DNA of 64,000 nucleotides, taken from the sequence record OP617745.1. One strand, 5' to 3'. Below are positions 12,531 through 58,773 of the stretch, one piece after another. Each line of letters begins with the position of its first letter. Position 1 is the first letter of the stretch. A program made the translations under genes and the position numbers. Below the pieces are notes generated by a model, which had not been told where the DNA came from, made no database searches, and worked only from the letters and a program-made list of their open reading frames with translations.

Positions 12531-12844
12531 AATTTAAATTAAAATATGTTGTACTACTGTTGGTATTATCTTTAATTGGATGCAATAGTACTGCTCCAGT
12601 TGAGATGAAACAACAAGTACAACAGGAAGTACTATTGGAACGCTGTTCAGAAGACACTCCATTACCAACACAAAAAACTGTTGACAAAGACGGAAATGTT
12701 GGATATGATGGTAAAGAAGTCTTTAAGGTATTACGTGAATGGGATGCAATTTATTTTGATTGTGCGAGCCGTTTAGATGCACTCATTACGTATCTACAAA
12801 AAACCCAAGATCCTAATTTTAAGGTAACTATAAAGGATAAGTAA
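12527..12844 (+). CDS. o-spanin (Rz1-like lipoprotein)
   Basis: Signal peptide with lipobox LIGC; ATGA overlap with the i-spanin. Confidence 0.7.
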   Translation: MKFKLKYVVLLLVLSLIGCNSTAPVEMKQQVQQEVLLERCSEDTPLPTQKTVDKDGNVGYDGKEVFKVLREWDAIYFDCASRLDALITYLQKTQDPNFKVTIKDK

Positions 12845-13428
12845 TGAATAAGTACAAAGTACTAAAAGTATTACCTTTATCATTTCTAAATTCGTTAGAT
12901 CATAATGATATCAAATCAAAAATAGGACATTGTGGTGATTCAAATTTTTTATACTATCCACAAAAAGTAAAAACATTTTCCAAGAATAACAAATGTGTAG
13001 CATGTGGAATCGAAGCCACTGAAGTACGAATTGAATACATGCAAGAGTGTTCTCATGCAATCTATAGCAAACCACACATCAATGTATATGCGGTGCTTGG
13101 TAATTATTCAGTACTAATGACAGTTGATCACGATATACTTGCATCCGAAGTCGGAAATGATTTAGACAATAATTTTAGTACCATGTGTTCCAAATGTAAT
13201 AACAAAAGAGGATCAAAGTATAAGACACTCAAATCATTCCTCAAATCAATTGAGGGGCGAGATCTCTTAAAGGAATACATGTCTGTACCTAAAAAGACAA
13301 AAACCAGTCAGAACGCGGCTGAGCAGCGTTTACACGATGAATTTTGGAAATTAGGACATAACTGGCATTACAGAGAATATCTTCGTTATCTGAAGGCCAA
13401 AAATAAAGCTAAAAAGAAAGGGGCATAA
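12844..13428 (+). CDS. HNH endonuclease
   Basis: CVACG ... LMTVDHDI ... NFSTMCSKCNNKRG (zinc-binding HNH). Confidence 0.7.
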   Translation: MNKYKVLKVLPLSFLNSLDHNDIKSKIGHCGDSNFLYYPQKVKTFSKNNKCVACGIEATEVRIEYMQECSHAIYSKPHINVYAVLGNYSVLMTVDHDILASEVGNDLDNNFSTMCSKCNNKRGSKYKTLKSFLKSIEGRDLLKEYMSVPKKTKTSQNAAEQRLHDEFWKLGHNWHYREYLRYLKAKNKAKKKGA

Positions 13429-13502: not shown

Positions 13503-13898
13503 ATGCTCAAAGAGTTTGATTACAGTACTTTAGAAGTTATTTCAGCAGTTAAAAATATCAACAATTTAGATGATGAAAAAACAGTACTGATCACGATCAC
13601 ATTTGTAAACAAAGAAGATTCATATAAACATTTATCTGGCATAGAAGAAATGTTGCATAAACTTCATTTAGAAGAAAATCGGAAATATATTAAACTACAA
13701 TGTAGTTATACCCAAAATTTGAACAATTTTTTAATTATAAATAAAACAATTAAGATTAGTTTCAATGATCCTAAACAAAAATACCGTACTAAATCGTTCA
13801 ACGAAGATCAGGTTAGTAATGAATTACTAATGGATATTGAATTTATCAATGATTTCTTCGATTCATGTGATAATGAATTAAAAAAGGTATACGTGTAA
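13503..13898 (+). CDS. Hypothetical protein
   Basis: 131-aa ORF with phage-like codon usage. Confidence 0.65.
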   Translation: MLKEFDYSTLEVISAVKNINNLDDEKTVLITITFVNKEDSYKHLSGIEEMLHKLHLEENRKYIKLQCSYTQNLNNFLIINKTIKISFNDPKQKYRTKSFNEDQVSNELLMDIEFINDFFDSCDNELKKVYV

Positions 13899-13906
13899 AA
13901 ATATTT

Positions 13907-13936
13907 TTGAACAATTTTAGTACTATGTAATATAAT
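13907..13936 (+). promoter_or_regulatory. sigma70-type promoter upstream of the non-coding region
   Basis: TTGAAC-N18-TATAAT. Confidence 0.6.
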
Positions 13937-13949
13937 GTAAATAATATCA

Positions 13950-14451
13950 ATTCGAGGACTGAATTCTGCTGAATATCTATATGTATATGGATATACAAAT
14001 AAACTTGAACCTATCGAAAACGTAGAGAGGCATTTGAGTGGTTCAGCAGCACGCCTTGCAGGTAGTACCGGTGATAAAATCCTAAGTGTGAGCTTACAAA
14101 GCACAGCCATAATTCCAAAGAGTGCACAGGAGTCATCGCAACACGGCAAGTAAAAGAGAGCTATAGACATATGCTTTCCATCACTATAATCCTCTGGTGA
14201 TGATAGATTGAACCTACGGAAAGTATTTTCCATAATTGTTAAGGGAGAATACACCAAAATTTTTTCAGGAGAGTTGCGTCTAAATTTTGTTGTATTCAAG
14301 TACCGAGATTGGTCAAATAGTCTCAGTATTAAGTGTGTGATATGATACCTACTAAACCACATGACCTCTGCATAAGACTGAGATAGGGAGAAACCGGGCA
14401 GACCGCTTCCGTTCTTTATAAAAAAGAAATTCTCAATTTGACAGTTTCGAA
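13950..14451 (+). ncRNA. Candidate large structured non-coding RNA (~500 nt), family unknown
   Basis: No credible + strand ORF and higher GC than the flanks. 5' and 3' ends pair (TTCGAGGACTG / CAGTTTCGAA), with many internal helices and a loop-to-distal pairing (see findings). Confidence 0.6.
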
Positions 14452-14459
14452 GACTACCA

Positions 14460-14689
14460 TCTTCAAGAAATAAAAAAAAACGTTTTTAAGAACGCGTTCC
14501 GTTGCGTTATTTTTTTCTTCCCTCCCTGTGGGGGGGGGATATAAAGTTTCTCTTCCAAACCTCTTCAAGAAATAAAAAAGAAAAACAACAATTACCGATT
14601 AAAATCAAACAACACAGAACGAAACGAAGTGAAGTGAATGAGTTGTTTGATTTTATGAGAGATGTGTTGAACGAAGTGAAATACATCTC
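14460..14689. repeat. Direct-repeat and hairpin block (origin-like)
   Basis: 18-bp direct repeat TCTTCAAGAAATAAAAAA at 14460 and 14562; G9 tract at 14530-14538; two hairpins (14600-14655, 14659-14689) whose loops both carry AACGAAGTGA. Confidence 0.7.
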
Positions 14690-14924
14690 GACATGGATAA
14701 ACAATATATACTTAATTAACAAAAACAAATCAAGTACTGAATAAATTACAAAGGAATTACATCCAATGAATGCTAAAAAAGAACCAGATATAATTAAGTA
14801 CTGAAATTAGTTAATTAGTTCTCTTTTTAAACAACCGACTTTAAATTAATCAAATAAATTCATTTAATAAAAAGAAATAAATATTTCTATAAATCCCATA
14901 CCAAAGGGCTTATAGGAGAAATTA

Positions 14925-15374
14925 ATGCAAGAACCACAAGACATAAACCAGTTACGCAATTTAATGGATTTCATAGTACAATCAGAAGAAGACGAGTCCT
15001 ATGATCAATTACTGCTTACATTTATTGAAAATAGTTTATTCCTTGAATCAGCAGCACACAACTGGCATTTACAAAGCAAACACTACACAAAGCACTTACA
15101 ATTAGATGAGTTATACAAAGAACTACCGGAGTTCATTGATGCATTTATTGAAGGAATTATGGAATCAAGAGGACCATTGGTAATTGGTACTGGAAATAGC
15201 TACCAATTCACTGAAATAAGTACTTGTATTCCTACGTTAGAAGAGTATCTAAATCAATGCGAAGCAATTCACCAGATGCTTGAATCTAATGAGGACTATG
15301 GAAGTACTAACACGCTTGAAGACATAATGAGTTTTATTGATGGTGTTCTTTATAAATTAAAACATTTACAATAA
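14925..15374 (+). CDS. Ferritin-like / Dps-like protein
   Basis: AHNWHLQSKHYTKHLQLDELYKELPEFIDAFIE resembles the Dps ferroxidase helices; AGGAG SD. Confidence 0.65.
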   Translation: MQEPQDINQLRNLMDFIVQSEEDESYDQLLLTFIENSLFLESAAHNWHLQSKHYTKHLQLDELYKELPEFIDAFIEGIMESRGPLVIGTGNSYQFTEISTCIPTLEEYLNQCEAIHQMLESNEDYGSTNTLEDIMSFIDGVLYKLKHLQ

Positions 15375-23874: not shown

Positions 23875-24119
23875 AAGTAACTATCTATGGTCGTAGTAGT
23901 GGTTGTAAGTGGTGTGATACAGCCAAAGCAGTATGTGAAACCAATGGTTTTGATATGACATTTATTGATATCGATAGTGAAGGTATTGATGCCAATAAAC
24001 TTGCTGAAATCTGTGGTGAACCAGTACGCTCCGTTCCACAAATTTTTGTGAATGGTGAATTCGTGAAAGGTGGTTGTACTGGTTTTGTTGAAGGTCTGAA
24101 AGAAGGTAAATTCATTTGA
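23871..24119 (+). CDS. Glutaredoxin
   Basis: CKWC redox motif; RSVPQIFVNG. Confidence 0.9.
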   Translation: MKVTIYGRSSGCKWCDTAKAVCETNGFDMTFIDIDSEGIDANKLAEICGEPVRSVPQIFVNGEFVKGGCTGFVEGLKEGKFI

Positions 24120-24346
24120 ATATTGAAGAAATCTCTAAACGTGCAAAAGAAGTTGCAGAACAATTAGGAACTGATTTCGTTATTCCAGATTATAATGCAT
24201 CTAAAGAAAAAGCAGAACGCAATATTAAAATGCGTATGGAATACTTGTCACGTAAAGAAGAATACGATAATGTAATTGAAATGATTTTTGAAAAATATAG
24301 TCCAGAAGTCATTAATTGTTTTATTAACGATATCAAGAAATCCTAA
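24116..24346 (+). CDS. Hypothetical protein
   Basis: 76 aa; TTG start overlapping the glutaredoxin stop. Confidence 0.55.
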   Translation: MNIEEISKRAKEVAEQLGTDFVIPDYNASKEKAERNIKMRMEYLSRKEEYDNVIEMIFEKYSPEVINCFINDIKKS

Positions 24347-24394
24347 ATAATATTGAAGGAACATGATTCCTTTGTACAATAAGAGGATATTACT

Positions 24395-24634
24395 ATGCTT
24401 AGTTTCCGTGAAAAATTAGCTAAAGGTATTTTTGAACACTCTACTCCTGCTACTTTTATTCCTAAAAAATCAAAATTCTTAGGAACAATTACAGAAGATG
24501 GTTATTGTGATTTTGAAGCACCAGAGAGTGATTGGTATCTTACTAAGGATTCAACACGAAGTAATAGACTTTATAAAAGTACACTAGCACGACAACATCG
24601 TAAAGAAGTGAAACGTATACGTTTCAAAGAATAA
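24395..24634 (+). CDS. Hypothetical protein
   Basis: 79 aa, GAGGA SD, preceded by CTAAATA. Confidence 0.6.
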   Translation: MLSFREKLAKGIFEHSTPATFIPKKSKFLGTITEDGYCDFEAPESDWYLTKDSTRSNRLYKSTLARQHRKEVKRIRFKE

Positions 24635-24639
24635 ATCAA

Positions 24640-24675
24640 AAAAGGACTTCAAATATTTGAAGTCCTTTTCTTTTC
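24640..24675 (+). terminator. Intrinsic terminator
   Basis: AAAAGGACTTCAAA-TA-TTTGAAGTCCTTTT. Confidence 0.8.
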
Positions 24676-24685
24676 AGGAAAATAT

Positions 24686-56463: not shown

Positions 56464-58773
56464 ATGAATCTACAAAAACTATTTAAAGTAAGCGATGATC
56501 TGGCAACTTCTCTTGGTCATACATATCTTACTATTGACCATATTAGTGCTACACTTCTTGAAGTTGATAGTATTGTAGAACTATTCAATACCATGAATAT
56601 TGATACAAATAAACTTCACAGTCGTGTGATGAATTTTCTGAAAAGTACTGAATATCCAAATCAACCGGCTAGTATGTCAGCTAATGGGACTAACAGTAGT
56701 TCTTTGTTGGTAAATCGCGTATTCAATGAACTGTCAAAAAAATCAGTTATTGAACAACTTAAACGTGATGATTTTACAATTGATTCATACTTTGTACTAT
56801 TTGAATGCTTGTCTTTCCCTAATACAGCACTAGAAGCTGCGTTAAAAGAAGAAGGCGTGTCTCGCACTGAAGCAGCACGTGCATTACAAAAACATGTGGC
56901 GAAAATCGATAGTTCCATCAATCTACAAAGTATTGCTGAAGATCCTAATTCATCAGATAAGAAAGCGACGGCGGGACAAATGAATGCAATTAAACAAAAA
57001 ACTCTAGAAGATTTTACTGTAAACCTGACTAAACTTGCACAGGAAGGTAAACTTGACCCAATGATCGGTCGCCAAAAAGAACTTCAATCACTAATTGAAG
57101 TAATGGCACGTAAAAACAAAAAGAATGCTATTCTTACTGGTGATGCAGGAGTCGGTAAAACTCAGATCGTCGATGGTTTTGCACAAGCCATTGCTGATGG
57201 TGACGTACCTGACTATCTGAAAGGTGTTGAGGTATTATCTCTTAACGTTTCTGCTGTAACTGCTGGTACAAAATACCGTGGTGAATTCGAAGAACGTATG
57301 GAAGGTATTATTAAAGAACTTAAAAAACGAGAAAATGTAATTTTGTTCATTGATGAAGTACATATTATGATGGGTGCTGGTGGTAGCAGTACTGGATCTA
57401 TGGATATGAGCAATATCATGAAACCAGCACTTTCACGTGGTGATATTCGTGTTATCGGTGCAACAACTTATGAGGAATATCGCCAGAACATTGAAAAAGA
57501 TGCTGCATTTTCCCGCCGATTCACCAAAATTGATGTAGTTGAACCTAGTATTAACGAAACACGTGAAATTATTAATGGACTGAAAGGTACTTATGAAAAA
57601 TATCACAACGTAACATTCAGTACTGAAACAATTAACTCAATTATTAATCTGAGTTCTAAATTTTTACAAAATAAAAAGTTTCCAGATAAAGCAATTGATC
57701 TGATGGATAGTGCTGCTGCTAAAATTCGTTCAGAAAAACGTTCAGATCTAAAAGTGACGGTACGTGATATTGAAGAAGTTGTGTCCAGAATCACAAACCT
57801 TGATATTAGTGTTATTTCTTGTACTGAAAGTGAACGCATGAATAATCTACCAGATGTTCTACGTTCGCGTGTATTTGGTCAAGATGAAGCAATTGAAAAA
57901 TTGGTCGATAACGTTATGGTTGCACGTGCTGGGCTACGTGATAAATCAAGTGTTCAGGGTGCTTTCATGTTTGTTGGACCATCTGGTACAGGTAAAACTG
58001 AAATCACAAAAGCACTTGCTGAAGCAATGGGTTCTGAGCTAATTCGTTTTGATATGTCAGAGTTTTCACAAGATCACACTGTATCTAAACTTATTGGTTC
58101 ACCTCCTGGATATGTAGGTCATGAAACAGGTAATGGTCAGCTTCTTGATAAAGTTGAACAATTCCCTAATGCAGTACTTCTACTGGATGAAATTGAAAAA
58201 GCACATCCAAAGGTACTACTGACATTCCTACAAGTATTGGATGAAGGGCGTTTGACTGGTTCACAAGGTAAAACAGTTTACTTTAATAATATTACGGTTA
58301 TTATGACTACAAACCTTGGAGCAGCAGATTCCAATAAACGTAGTATCGGTGTAAGTACAGTGGATTCTGCACAAGAAAAAGCTATTAAAGCATTTTTACC
58401 ACCAGAATTCATCAATCGCATTGATAGTATTGTTAAATTCAATGAACTATCATCAGAAGCAATTGATAGTGTAATTGACAAGTTTATGGGGGCATTGCGT
58501 GAACATGTTAAAGAACGTGGAATTGAAGTGGTACTGACCAAGCGTGCACGTGAATACCTAGCAGAGAATGGTGTTCAGAACGGCATGGGTGCTCGTCCAA
58601 TGAAGCGTTTGATTGAGCAATGCATTCGTGTACCTTTGGCAAAAGAAATGCTTCTAGGCTCTCTGGTGAACGGTGGTAAGGTAACGTTTGATGTGATTGA
58701 TGGTAAGATTGCAATTAAACAAAAAGTTAAAAAAGCCACAAAGGAAATTGATTCAGCAGAATTAGAGGCATAA
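56464..58773 (+). CDS. clpA: ClpA-like Hsp100 ATPase (two AAA+ modules)
   Basis: LDPMIGRQ; GDAGVGKT; LFIDEVH; GPSGTGKTE; RFDMSEF...SKLIGSPPGYVG; LLLDEIEKAHP; PPEFINRID; GMGARPM. Confidence 0.92.
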   Translation: MNLQKLFKVSDDLATSLGHTYLTIDHISATLLEVDSIVELFNTMNIDTNKLHSRVMNFLKSTEYPNQPASMSANGTNSSSLLVNRVFNELSKKSVIEQLKRDDFTIDSYFVLFECLSFPNTALEAALKEEGVSRTEAARALQKHVAKIDSSINLQSIAEDPNSSDKKATAGQMNAIKQKTLEDFTVNLTKLAQEGKLDPMIGRQKELQSLIEVMARKNKKNAILTGDAGVGKTQIVDGFAQAIADGDVPDYLKGVEVLSLNVSAVTAGTKYRGEFEERMEGIIKELKKRENVILFIDEVHIMMGAGGSSTGSMDMSNIMKPALSRGDIRVIGATTYEEYRQNIEKDAAFSRRFTKIDVVEPSINETREIINGLKGTYEKYHNVTFSTETINSIINLSSKFLQNKKFPDKAIDLMDSAAAKIRSEKRSDLKVTVRDIEEVVSRITNLDISVISCTESERMNNLPDVLRSRVFGQDEAIEKLVDNVMVARAGLRDKSSVQGAFMFVGPSGTGKTEITKALAEAMGSELIRFDMSEFSQDHTVSKLIGSPPGYVGHETGNGQLLDKVEQFPNAVLLLDEIEKAHPKVLLTFLQVLDEGRLTGSQGKTVYFNNITVIMTTNLGAADSNKRSIGVSTVDSAQEKAIKAFLPPEFINRIDSIVKFNELSSEAIDSVIDKFMGALREHVKERGIEVVLTKRAREYLAENGVQNGMGARPMKRLIEQCIRVPLAKEMLLGSLVNGGKVTFDVIDGKIAIKQKVKKATKEIDSAELEA

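Follow-up and report, generated by a model that had tools for sequence, protein, structure and literature searches.

The Klebsiella jumbo phage KP13-7 (OP617745.1), a 358-kb Alcyoneusvirus of the RaK2 group, carries within the stretch of 64,000 nucleotides (nt) analysed here (the window) what appears, from sequence comparison, to be one gene of a stand-alone, non-coding RNA family that has its own promoter and apparently constitutes a new class. That positions 13944-14517 on the plus strand are a functional structured RNA gene we regard as close to certain. In the fuller explanation that we favour, host RNA polymerase would make the RNA early in infection and the RNA would then act in trans as a compact, protein-sized tertiary fold, serving as a scaffold or decoy for some macromolecule of the host or the phage; taking its observed and its proposed parts together, we give this explanation a probability of about 0.6. 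An earlier reading of the letters alone (the sequence-only reading) had proposed here a promoter-driven, highly structured non-coding RNA of ~500 nt and of an undescribed class, and covariation, the promoter and the lack of any match in Rfam all speak for that proposal.

The evidence comes foremost from 34 homologues, mostly less than 96% identical to one another, which were aligned with MAFFT in two pieces, A3 for the 5'/central part and A2 for the 3' part, helices being taken from RNAalifold, from an all-against-all covariation scan and by inspection. The fold of the whole family comprises 85 pairs in 17 helices, three of them pseudoknot helices, and is 93-94% paired as against 32-46% with the partners slid; compensatory changes are abundant, with 62 compensatory pairs. 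The 48 pairs of the eight helices in the 3' domain are 93.8% paired, and only 35-46% once the 3' partners are shifted by 1-3 columns; 35 of them have changed on both sides and none of 500 shuffles reaches the observed values, and in the 5'/central domain 37 pairs in nine helices are 93.4% paired (32-43% when slid), 27 having changed on both sides. G-U pairs are frequent (UG 23 times with CG 10 times in one instance, GU 24 times with AU 9 times in another), and since a G-U that alternates with G-C or A-U would be an A-C mismatch on the other strand, the constraint acts on the plus-strand RNA. The few substitutions in the stems within Alcyoneusvirus likewise keep the pairing, with G-U becoming G-C at 14329, U-A becoming U-G at 14294 and, in K64-1, G-C becoming G-U at 14230. 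The minimum free energy (MFE) of the span 13943-14451 is -127.8 kcal/mol (z = -2.67, with none of 100 dinucleotide shuffles equally stable), compared with z = -1.76 for the minus strand, and the full transcript 13944-14517 has z = -1.84. The window copy itself possesses the promoter, the invariant UAAGGGA(G), the 3' three-way junction, the pseudoknots PK1 and PK2 described below, the motif AGAAACNGNNCANNCCGCUU and a counterpart of each family helix; at helices P4, P8 and P9, where MAFFT misaligns the window, the pairing register was set right by eye.

The Klebsiella relatives of the window are 94-100% identical to it and are too close to be informative. The way into the family was a gene-free gap of Escherichia phage EJP2 that has an 81-nt core in common with the window; as a query this gap gave ~500-nt matches of ~70% identity in 70 jumbo-phage records, mostly unannotated, at 4-5 places per record. 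A query with the 3' domain found 236 places in 73 phage records, 3-5 per genome, and all 73 come from the RaK2/121Q/PBECO4/GAP32/CBB/BF/Yen9-04/XbC2 group, which infects Enterobacterales and Xanthomonas. Furthermore some 40 full-length copies in viral contigs came up with the invariant motif AGAAACNGNNCANNCCGCTT, and a stricter form of it yielded 72 in metagenomes, several per jumbo contig, which brings the family to 119 sequences, 67 of them full-length after removal of those at least 97% identical. The conserved body spans ~390-530 nt, counted from the -10 box as far as the 3' hairpin. Family profiles that include the window sequence match 13940-14465 in nhmmer (E about 1e-33 to 2e-33 and 3e-32), and the copy at 13944-14517 (+) is the only one within the window. 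In a scan of bacterial genomes with a 14-base motif all 120 among the matches listed were chance, absence from bacteria not being established thereby.

KP13-7 has at least one more copy, a diverged paralogue outside the window at ~187.1-187.5 kb (locus L312, 1183-1612), in which several "invariant" motifs are altered (GGGGAAAC..CCGCCUCU, AAAAGGGAG, loop GAAACAAGUA) and PK1 (CUUGAAU with AUUCAAG), PK2 and the promoter are kept. This paralogue escapes the search motif, and copy numbers based on motifs are therefore lower bounds. Clustering by gene neighbourhood sorts the loci into five syntenic types with unrelated neighbours:

Type A: upstream of an uncharacterised gene of 175 amino acids (aa), a Dam methylase gene and a cytidylyltransferase gene.
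Type B: flanked by an endonuclease VII-like gene, divergent and adjacent (e.g. locus L024), and by a baseplate gene that is convergent.
Type C: in the neighbourhood of an ADP-ribosylglycohydrolase gene.
Type D: carried by GAP32 and CBB.
Type E: downstream of spanin, HNH and DUF7325 genes; the type of the window copy, which lies in the DUF7325/DUF5856 interval.

Given fixed syntenic sites and unrelated neighbours, the paralogues are ancient and stably placed, and the type E copy of the window has only about 55% identity to other copies. Near-identical orthologues can nevertheless differ by whole modules (L012 and L063, L095 and L100, L002 and L004; alignment A3, columns 178-248 and 425-433), the P7 insert being short in one and long in the other (e.g. 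L012 and L063) or the module arm being GAUCCGUC in one and GUUGCGUC in the other, which suggests recombination or gene conversion among paralogues. No protein partner common to the neighbours of the five locus types was found among DUF7325, DUF5856, HNH, endonuclease VII-like, baseplate, ADP-ribosylglycohydrolase and Dam. Nuclease genes do recur near some copies. In type E there is an HNH gene two genes before the RNA, in locus L082 an HNH gene follows it, and type B has its endonuclease VII-like gene; free-standing homing endonucleases may simply happen to lie beside conserved DNA.

The fold consists of two halves, a 5'/central half made of helices P3-P9 and the pseudoknot P2, and a 3' three-way junction locked by PK1 and PK2. 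The elements of the gene, as they stand in the window, are the following:

13907-13936 (+): sigma-70-type promoter, -35 TTGAAC (13907-12), N18, -10 TATAAT (13931-36); 10 of 12 consensus positions.
13944-14517 (+): predicted primary transcript, about 574 nt, its ends placed by the promoter and the terminator.
13966-73 with 14042-49 (+): pseudoknot helix P2, CUGCUGAA with UUCAGCAG, the latter in the loop of hairpin P5; changes on both sides in 7 of 8 pairs.
13973-13994 (+): P3, variable hairpin of the MFE fold; other copies have here a hairpin whose sequence is unrelated.
14010-14030 (+): P4 hairpin, 5 of 5 pairs compensatory; loop of nine near-invariant nt, GAAAACGUA (14016-24), family form GAAAAYGUA.
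14038-40 with 14050-52 (+): P5, GUG with CAC, a 3-bp hairpin whose loop forms P2; 100% paired, 2 of 3 compensatory.
14055-59 with 14146-50 (+): P6, CUUGC with GCAAG, enclosing P7; 100% paired.
14069-72 with 14135-38 (+): P7, 100% paired; the window shows a compensating change of C-G to G-C.
14076-14130 (+): P7 insert arm, long, lineage-variable and swappable.
14156-14178 (+): P8 hairpin, GAGAGC with GCUUUC; 6 of 6 compensatory.
14179-14202 (+): expansion hairpin, CAUCAC with GUGAUG, lineage-specific, from sequence and MFE fold; another insertion here in EJP2-type copies.
14218-14231 (+): P9 hairpin, GGAAA-GUAU-UUUCC; family variants UAAGG/CCUUA, UAGG/CCUA and UGAG/CUCA.
14240-47 (+): invariant single-stranded block UAAGGGAG; the TAAGGGA columns are invariant.
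14247-14297 (+): P10, the module arm, its loop carrying the conserved CAGGAGAGUUGCGUC block; the closing pairs covary (A3:379-381 with A2:26-28, four pair types).
14299-14330 (+): P11 hairpin, 12 bp with an 8-nt loop G-GUCAAAU; 11 of 12 compensatory.
14312-18 with 14436-42 (+): pseudoknot PK1, GUCAAAU with AUUUGAC; 7 of 7 compensatory, 99.6% paired.
14334-14363 (+): P12 hairpin, UGUGU with ACAUG; 4 of 5 compensatory.
14367-14435 (+): core of the three-way junction, P13-P15 and PK2, 90-100% paired, with 3, 3, 2 and 3 compensatory pairs.
14367-71 with 14398-402 (+): pseudoknot PK2, UCUGC with GCAGA in the P14 loop; 100% paired, three compensatory pairs.
14379-83 with 14431-35 (+): P13, UGAGA with UCUCA.
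14386-90 with 14406-10 (+): P14, GGGAG with CUUCC.
14412-16 with 14425-28 (+): P15.
14449-14464 (+): P16, 3' hairpin, GAAGA with UCUUC, where other genera have GACGA with UCGUC, an A-U of the window replacing C-G; 67.7% pairing, on an imprecise stretch of the MAFFT alignment.
14491-14517 (+): intrinsic terminator, an AACGCG-N6-CGCGUU-like stem (14491-14508) followed by U7.
14517-14583 (+): conserved downstream element, a C-run/G-run hairpin (14520-38) and then a second copy of UCUUCAAGAAAUAAAAAA (14562-82).

One module of this fold moves between arms, the block ACAAUAUAG..CGUCYAAAAUU standing in the module arm in most copies and in the P15 hairpin in type C, where the arm is a short capped hairpin; such transplants are known from RNAs in which selection acts on the three-dimensional shape. 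Four of the helices that the sequence-only reading had drawn turn out to be family helices with compensatory changes, namely 13966-73/14042-49 (P2), 14156-61/14173-78 (P8), 14218-22/14227-31 (P9) and 14247-62/14281-97 (P10), and two are real hairpins of narrower standing, that at 13973-13994 recurring in place with unrelated sequence in each lineage and that at 14179-84/14197-202 being an expansion specific to the window lineage. Three pairings fall away. The stem said to close the 5' and 3' ends is particular to the Klebsiella-phage copy (duplex z = -2.0 against a family mean of +0.28), overlaps the covarying PK1 and P16, and loses its terminal pair in Muenster and RCIP0023 with no compensation; the leaders of several homologues measure just 4-7 nt. 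The proposed TCTCAGT/ACTGAGA helix reaches 53.5% pairing in the family and does not exceed shuffles, its strands belonging to P11 and P13 and the real partner of ACTGAGA lying at 14431-14435, and the GTTGCG/CGCAAC kissing contact is 64.2% paired with zero compensatory changes. The architecture does hold three other pseudoknots, P2, PK1 and PK2, which covary. The repeat of TTGAACCTA at 14005 and 14208 is present as described and occurs a third time at 57539. A loop contact between GGAUC and GAUCC was considered separately and rejected, as these motifs do not co-occur across copies and the alternation of GAUCC with GUUGC is, by eye, compensated within the local arm.

All 34 homologues have a promoter of the form TG(A/G)(A/G)AC-N17-TGnTATAAT ahead of their first conserved helix, equally placed in each and in most copies with an extended -10 element, and it is from this host-type sigma-70 promoter that early transcription by host RNA polymerase is inferred. 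In the window, transcription would start at about 13943-13945. Many copies, that of the KP13-7 window included, appear from their sequence to end at an intrinsic terminator; in the region of the window copy one terminator-like site was found against 0.5 expected. The extent 13943-14451 given by the sequence-only reading ends too early, P16 and the terminator lying beyond it and making the RNA ~65 nt longer. In the type A loci of several genera (L006:1430-1475, L005:1436-1470 and L007) a perfect terminator hairpin with its T-run separates the -10 box from the first RNA helix, and a transcript from that promoter would thus begin with a terminator; the other KP13-7 locus has the usual order of terminator and then promoter.

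Terminators stand at the equivalent place in locus types B, C and E. A rival explanation makes the RNA a cis-acting leader or attenuator of the downstream genes, a giant riboswitch-like 5' untranslated region with a regulated terminator. Four of the five locus types have a following gene in the same orientation, which begins 150-550 nt after the RNA with a terminator between, as such a leader would have it. The downstream genes are however unrelated (DUF5856; a 175-aa protein and then Dam; ADP-ribosylglycohydrolase; uncharacterised proteins), types A and D are without a separate strong terminator, and in type B the next gene, for baseplate, is convergent, so that there the RNA cannot be the leader of that gene. 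A leader function is accordingly highly improbable.

The gene occupies a gap of 1026 nt (13899-14924) that holds no plus-strand open reading frame (ORF) of at least 60 aa, and its GC content is 0.33-0.44 at 13900-14500, higher than the 0.24-0.28 just upstream and the 0.20 downstream; the description of a gene-free, GC-richer stretch that follows TTGAAC-N18-TATAAT is therefore accurate. A second gene-free stretch at 23875-24685, which emerges with an ORF threshold of 100 aa, was discarded as it holds three tandem plus-strand ORFs of 76-82 aa. The genes around the RNA are:

12844-13428: HNH endonuclease gene, 194 aa, ~0.5 kb upstream of the promoter at 13907; this and the spanin genes lie farther upstream than DUF7325.
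13503-13898: DUF7325 gene, upstream flank, complete.
14925-15374: DUF5856 gene, downstream flank, complete.

A protein-coding role for the region would have to rest on the antisense ORF of 184 aa, which runs from an ATG at 13808-14362 (-) and is annotated in RaK2 as ORF014w. This ORF finds no match in Pfam. In Muenster and RCIP0023, whose DNA is ~96% identical, it is shortened to 84 aa, other genera lack it, and across the 34 homologues the longest ORF has a median of 30 aa (plus strand) and 40 aa (minus strand). It is thus not conserved as a protein, and such conservation was among the findings that the sequence-only reading had named as refuting its proposal. Most annotators leave the region empty and the substitution pattern is that of base-paired stems, which makes a coding explanation hardly credible. 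Small "hypothetical protein" ORFs have been placed across the RNA inconsistently and on either strand, in RaK2 (ORF014w, L001:3009-3662), K64-1 (gp015-017, L310), Muenster (248-250, L003) and Hallingskeid (CDS0625-0629, L004). These are probably spurious gene calls, and the annotation of these genomes and of others would be corrected accordingly.

A search of the whole window with Rfam 15 cmscan gave no match at the gathering threshold, and nothing in the RNA was matched when the threshold was relaxed to E = 10 for 13700-15000 and to E = 1 for 12 homologue loci; the permissive matches that do arise (mir-7445, LLnc147 and similar) are chance ones that fall outside the RNA core, downstream of 14450. 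ARAGORN found neither a transfer RNA (tRNA) nor a transfer-messenger RNA (tmRNA) in the window. The failure to recognise tmRNA, RNase P or a group I intron from sequence is thereby confirmed, tmRNA being absent by both programs, group I introns (RF00028) having no Rfam match and the flanking DUF7325 and DUF5856 genes being intact. RNase P RNA (RF00010/RF00011) likewise has no match and the similar blocks AGAAACAGGGC and GAAACCCGU occur in the opposite order; a circularly permuted RNase P P4 helix (AAC(A)GGG with CCCGUU) was also set aside, since CCCGU covaries with a local ACGG partner. HEARO, the IscB omega RNA (RF02033), resembles the present case as a large structured RNA near an HNH gene, but it too has no Rfam match, the HNH protein here is of 194 aa and not a RuvC-HNH IscB, no guide-like variable 5' segment lies beside the nuclease gene, and an HNH gene is adjacent only in type E and locus L082. 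OLE (RF01071) and the raiA motif (RF03072) are similarly large, conserved, abundant-looking non-coding RNAs of bacterial type, probably protein-assisted, but they are chromosomal in Firmicutes/Actinobacteria and usually single-copy, the partners of OLE are known, and neither has an Rfam match here.

No published description of the RNA family was found in the literature. Two long non-coding RNAs of 450-620 nt, ncRNA002 and ncRNA004, have been defined by RNA-seq in the distantly related jumbo phage PA5oct, ncRNA002 being highly transcribed throughout infection (PMC7318152), so that such phages do make large non-coding RNAs. They are not homologues of the family, nhmmer --max with E up to 100 finding none and the family motifs being absent. 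A catalogue of 10,006 viral candidate RNAs is made up of motifs of 30-151 nt only, with four unnamed candidates upstream of Dam methylase genes, and fragments of the family may be among its entries (PMC10690425).

Among the closest known systems are ROOL and GOLLD, which are also of ~0.5-0.8 kb, rich in covarying helices and pseudoknots, and borne by phages or prophages as stand-alone genes. The sequence-only reading had pointed to them, and the analogy holds as one of kind (large, ornate, phage-borne) and not as family membership: there is no match to the covariance models of ROOL (RF03087) or GOLLD (RF01998), no tRNA gene, a frequent neighbour of ROOL and GOLLD, adjoins the RNA or is found in the window, the family has 3-5 paralogues at fixed sites, and its carriers are jumbo myoviruses of Enterobacterales/Xanthomonas whereas ROOL and GOLLD belong to Firmicutes or rumen phages. 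RNA cages of ROOL and GOLLD are described in 10.1101/2024.12.08.627333, and by analogy the present RNA could form an RNA-only particle, PK1 or P2 being intermolecular and each paralogue giving its own homo-oligomer. Its size, ornateness and phage origin would suit such a particle, and in most genomes the paralogue types do have different PK1 sequences (UUCAUGU, AUUGUAU, GUCGAAU, GUCAAAU). Two paralogues of CBB (L018 and L049) nevertheless have identical PK1, and the geometry of loop 1 and stem 2, which reads from sequence as a classical H-type pseudoknot with a 1-nt loop 1 and a 7-bp stem 2, suits an ordinary intramolecular pairing; together with the absence of any sequence or Rfam relation to ROOL or GOLLD and of tRNA neighbours, this leaves self-assembly unlikely.

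We return to the explanation in which the RNA is a scaffold or decoy. Action in trans rather than in cis is probable, and the contact surfaces would be the near-invariant single-stranded blocks, that is the GAAAAYGUA loop, UAAGGGAG, GAUAG and AGAAAC. The scaffold or decoy mechanism specifically, which is drawn by analogy, is tentative and falls somewhat short of even odds. Several points weigh against the explanation as a whole. The mechanism is a guess by analogy because no binding partner, ligand or catalytic site has been identified, the ends of the transcript are placed from sequence, and the conserved element at 14517-14583 is left unexplained by a structured RNA. As regards the fold, the energy beats shuffles only modestly (z = -2.67 and -1.84) and is suggestive, the covariation being decisive; the structure was derived and then counted on the same MAFFT alignments, in which P16 and the variable arms are poorly aligned; and the shuffle counts overstate independence because the sequences share descent and probably exchange between paralogues, the slid-partner control being clean.

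Few classes of large, intricately folded non-coding RNA are known (ribosomal RNA, RNase P, group I/II introns, tmRNA, OLE, ROOL, GOLLD, raiA), and something new about RNA biology was learnt from every one of them. With ~0.5 kb, ~85 pairs supported by covariation, three pseudoknots and a module that moves between arms, the present family would stand in that tier, and it is unusual in having 3-5 anciently diverged paralogues at fixed positions throughout a phage clade, every copy with a host-type promoter. Since several of the carrier phages infect common laboratory E. coli, Sharanji for example growing on K-12 MG1655, function, structure and partners are directly testable. A more far-reaching proposal is that the family is a new class of RNA machine, a ribozyme or a nano-assembly of RNA alone or of RNA with protein, whose paralogues carry distinct 7-nt "address" pairings, are made early, sort themselves and seize a host process. 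This is doubtful; if true, it would be the first ornate RNA class known as a conserved set of several paralogues in a virus able to grow on laboratory E. coli K-12.

Beyond the terminator, the element at 14517-14583 is conserved in all copies, with weak covariation in its C/G hairpin. A 21-nt direct repeat TCTTCAAGAAATAAAAAAA at 14460-14480 and 14562-14582 brackets the terminator and the C-run/G-run hairpin, and its first copy forms the 3' strand of P16. Most genera have the motif CGUCAG (CGTCAG) at both places and both Alcyoneusvirus paralogues have CUUCAAG, a parallel change. The repeat may be an alternative pairing partner in P16, a processing or binding site, or a product of exchange between paralogues. 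A further rival explanation is a self-cleaving or otherwise catalytic RNA, in which the double-pseudoknot junction would be the active site and the C(G/U)UCA(G/A) motifs the processing sites. A compact pseudoknotted core with near-invariant unpaired nucleotides, and a motif that occurs twice and has changed in parallel from CGUCAG to CUUCAAG in both Alcyoneusvirus paralogues, would be in keeping with it. Exchange between paralogues explains that parallel change equally well, however, no Rfam ribozyme model matches and there is no evidence of processing, so that catalysis seems very unlikely.

The RNA may also be seen as an origin or primer transcript, each copy being an origin module whose transcript would be driven by the promoter, form a persistent RNA-DNA hybrid and prime leading-strand synthesis. 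ColE1 RNA II and the transcripts of T4 oriF/oriG prime replication via such a hybrid, and the likeness lies in a promoter-driven structured RNA of ~550 nt with G-/C-rich elements near its 3' end and, as in T4, several sites per genome. A strong promoter, several dispersed copies per 350-kb genome and, downstream, the C-run/G-run hairpin, an AT-rich stretch (GC 0.20 at 14700-14899) and repeated GAACGAAGTGAA-like motifs would all fit, and the element beyond the terminator would be given a role. Here though a canonical terminator precedes the C/G hairpin, and three covarying pseudoknots with a transplanted module far exceed the needs of known primer RNAs; moreover there is no inflection of cumulative GC skew here and no evident initiator or iteron system, and we consider a priming function quite unlikely.

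Finally, the region 14600-14700, for which Rfam gave only a chance miRNA-like match, is AT-rich and contains repeated GAACGAAACGAAGTGAAGTGAA and TTGAACGAAGTGAAAT motifs and a small hairpin, and in other genera related AGAACGAACGNTAGTGAG motifs and a hairpin are also found downstream of the RNA.

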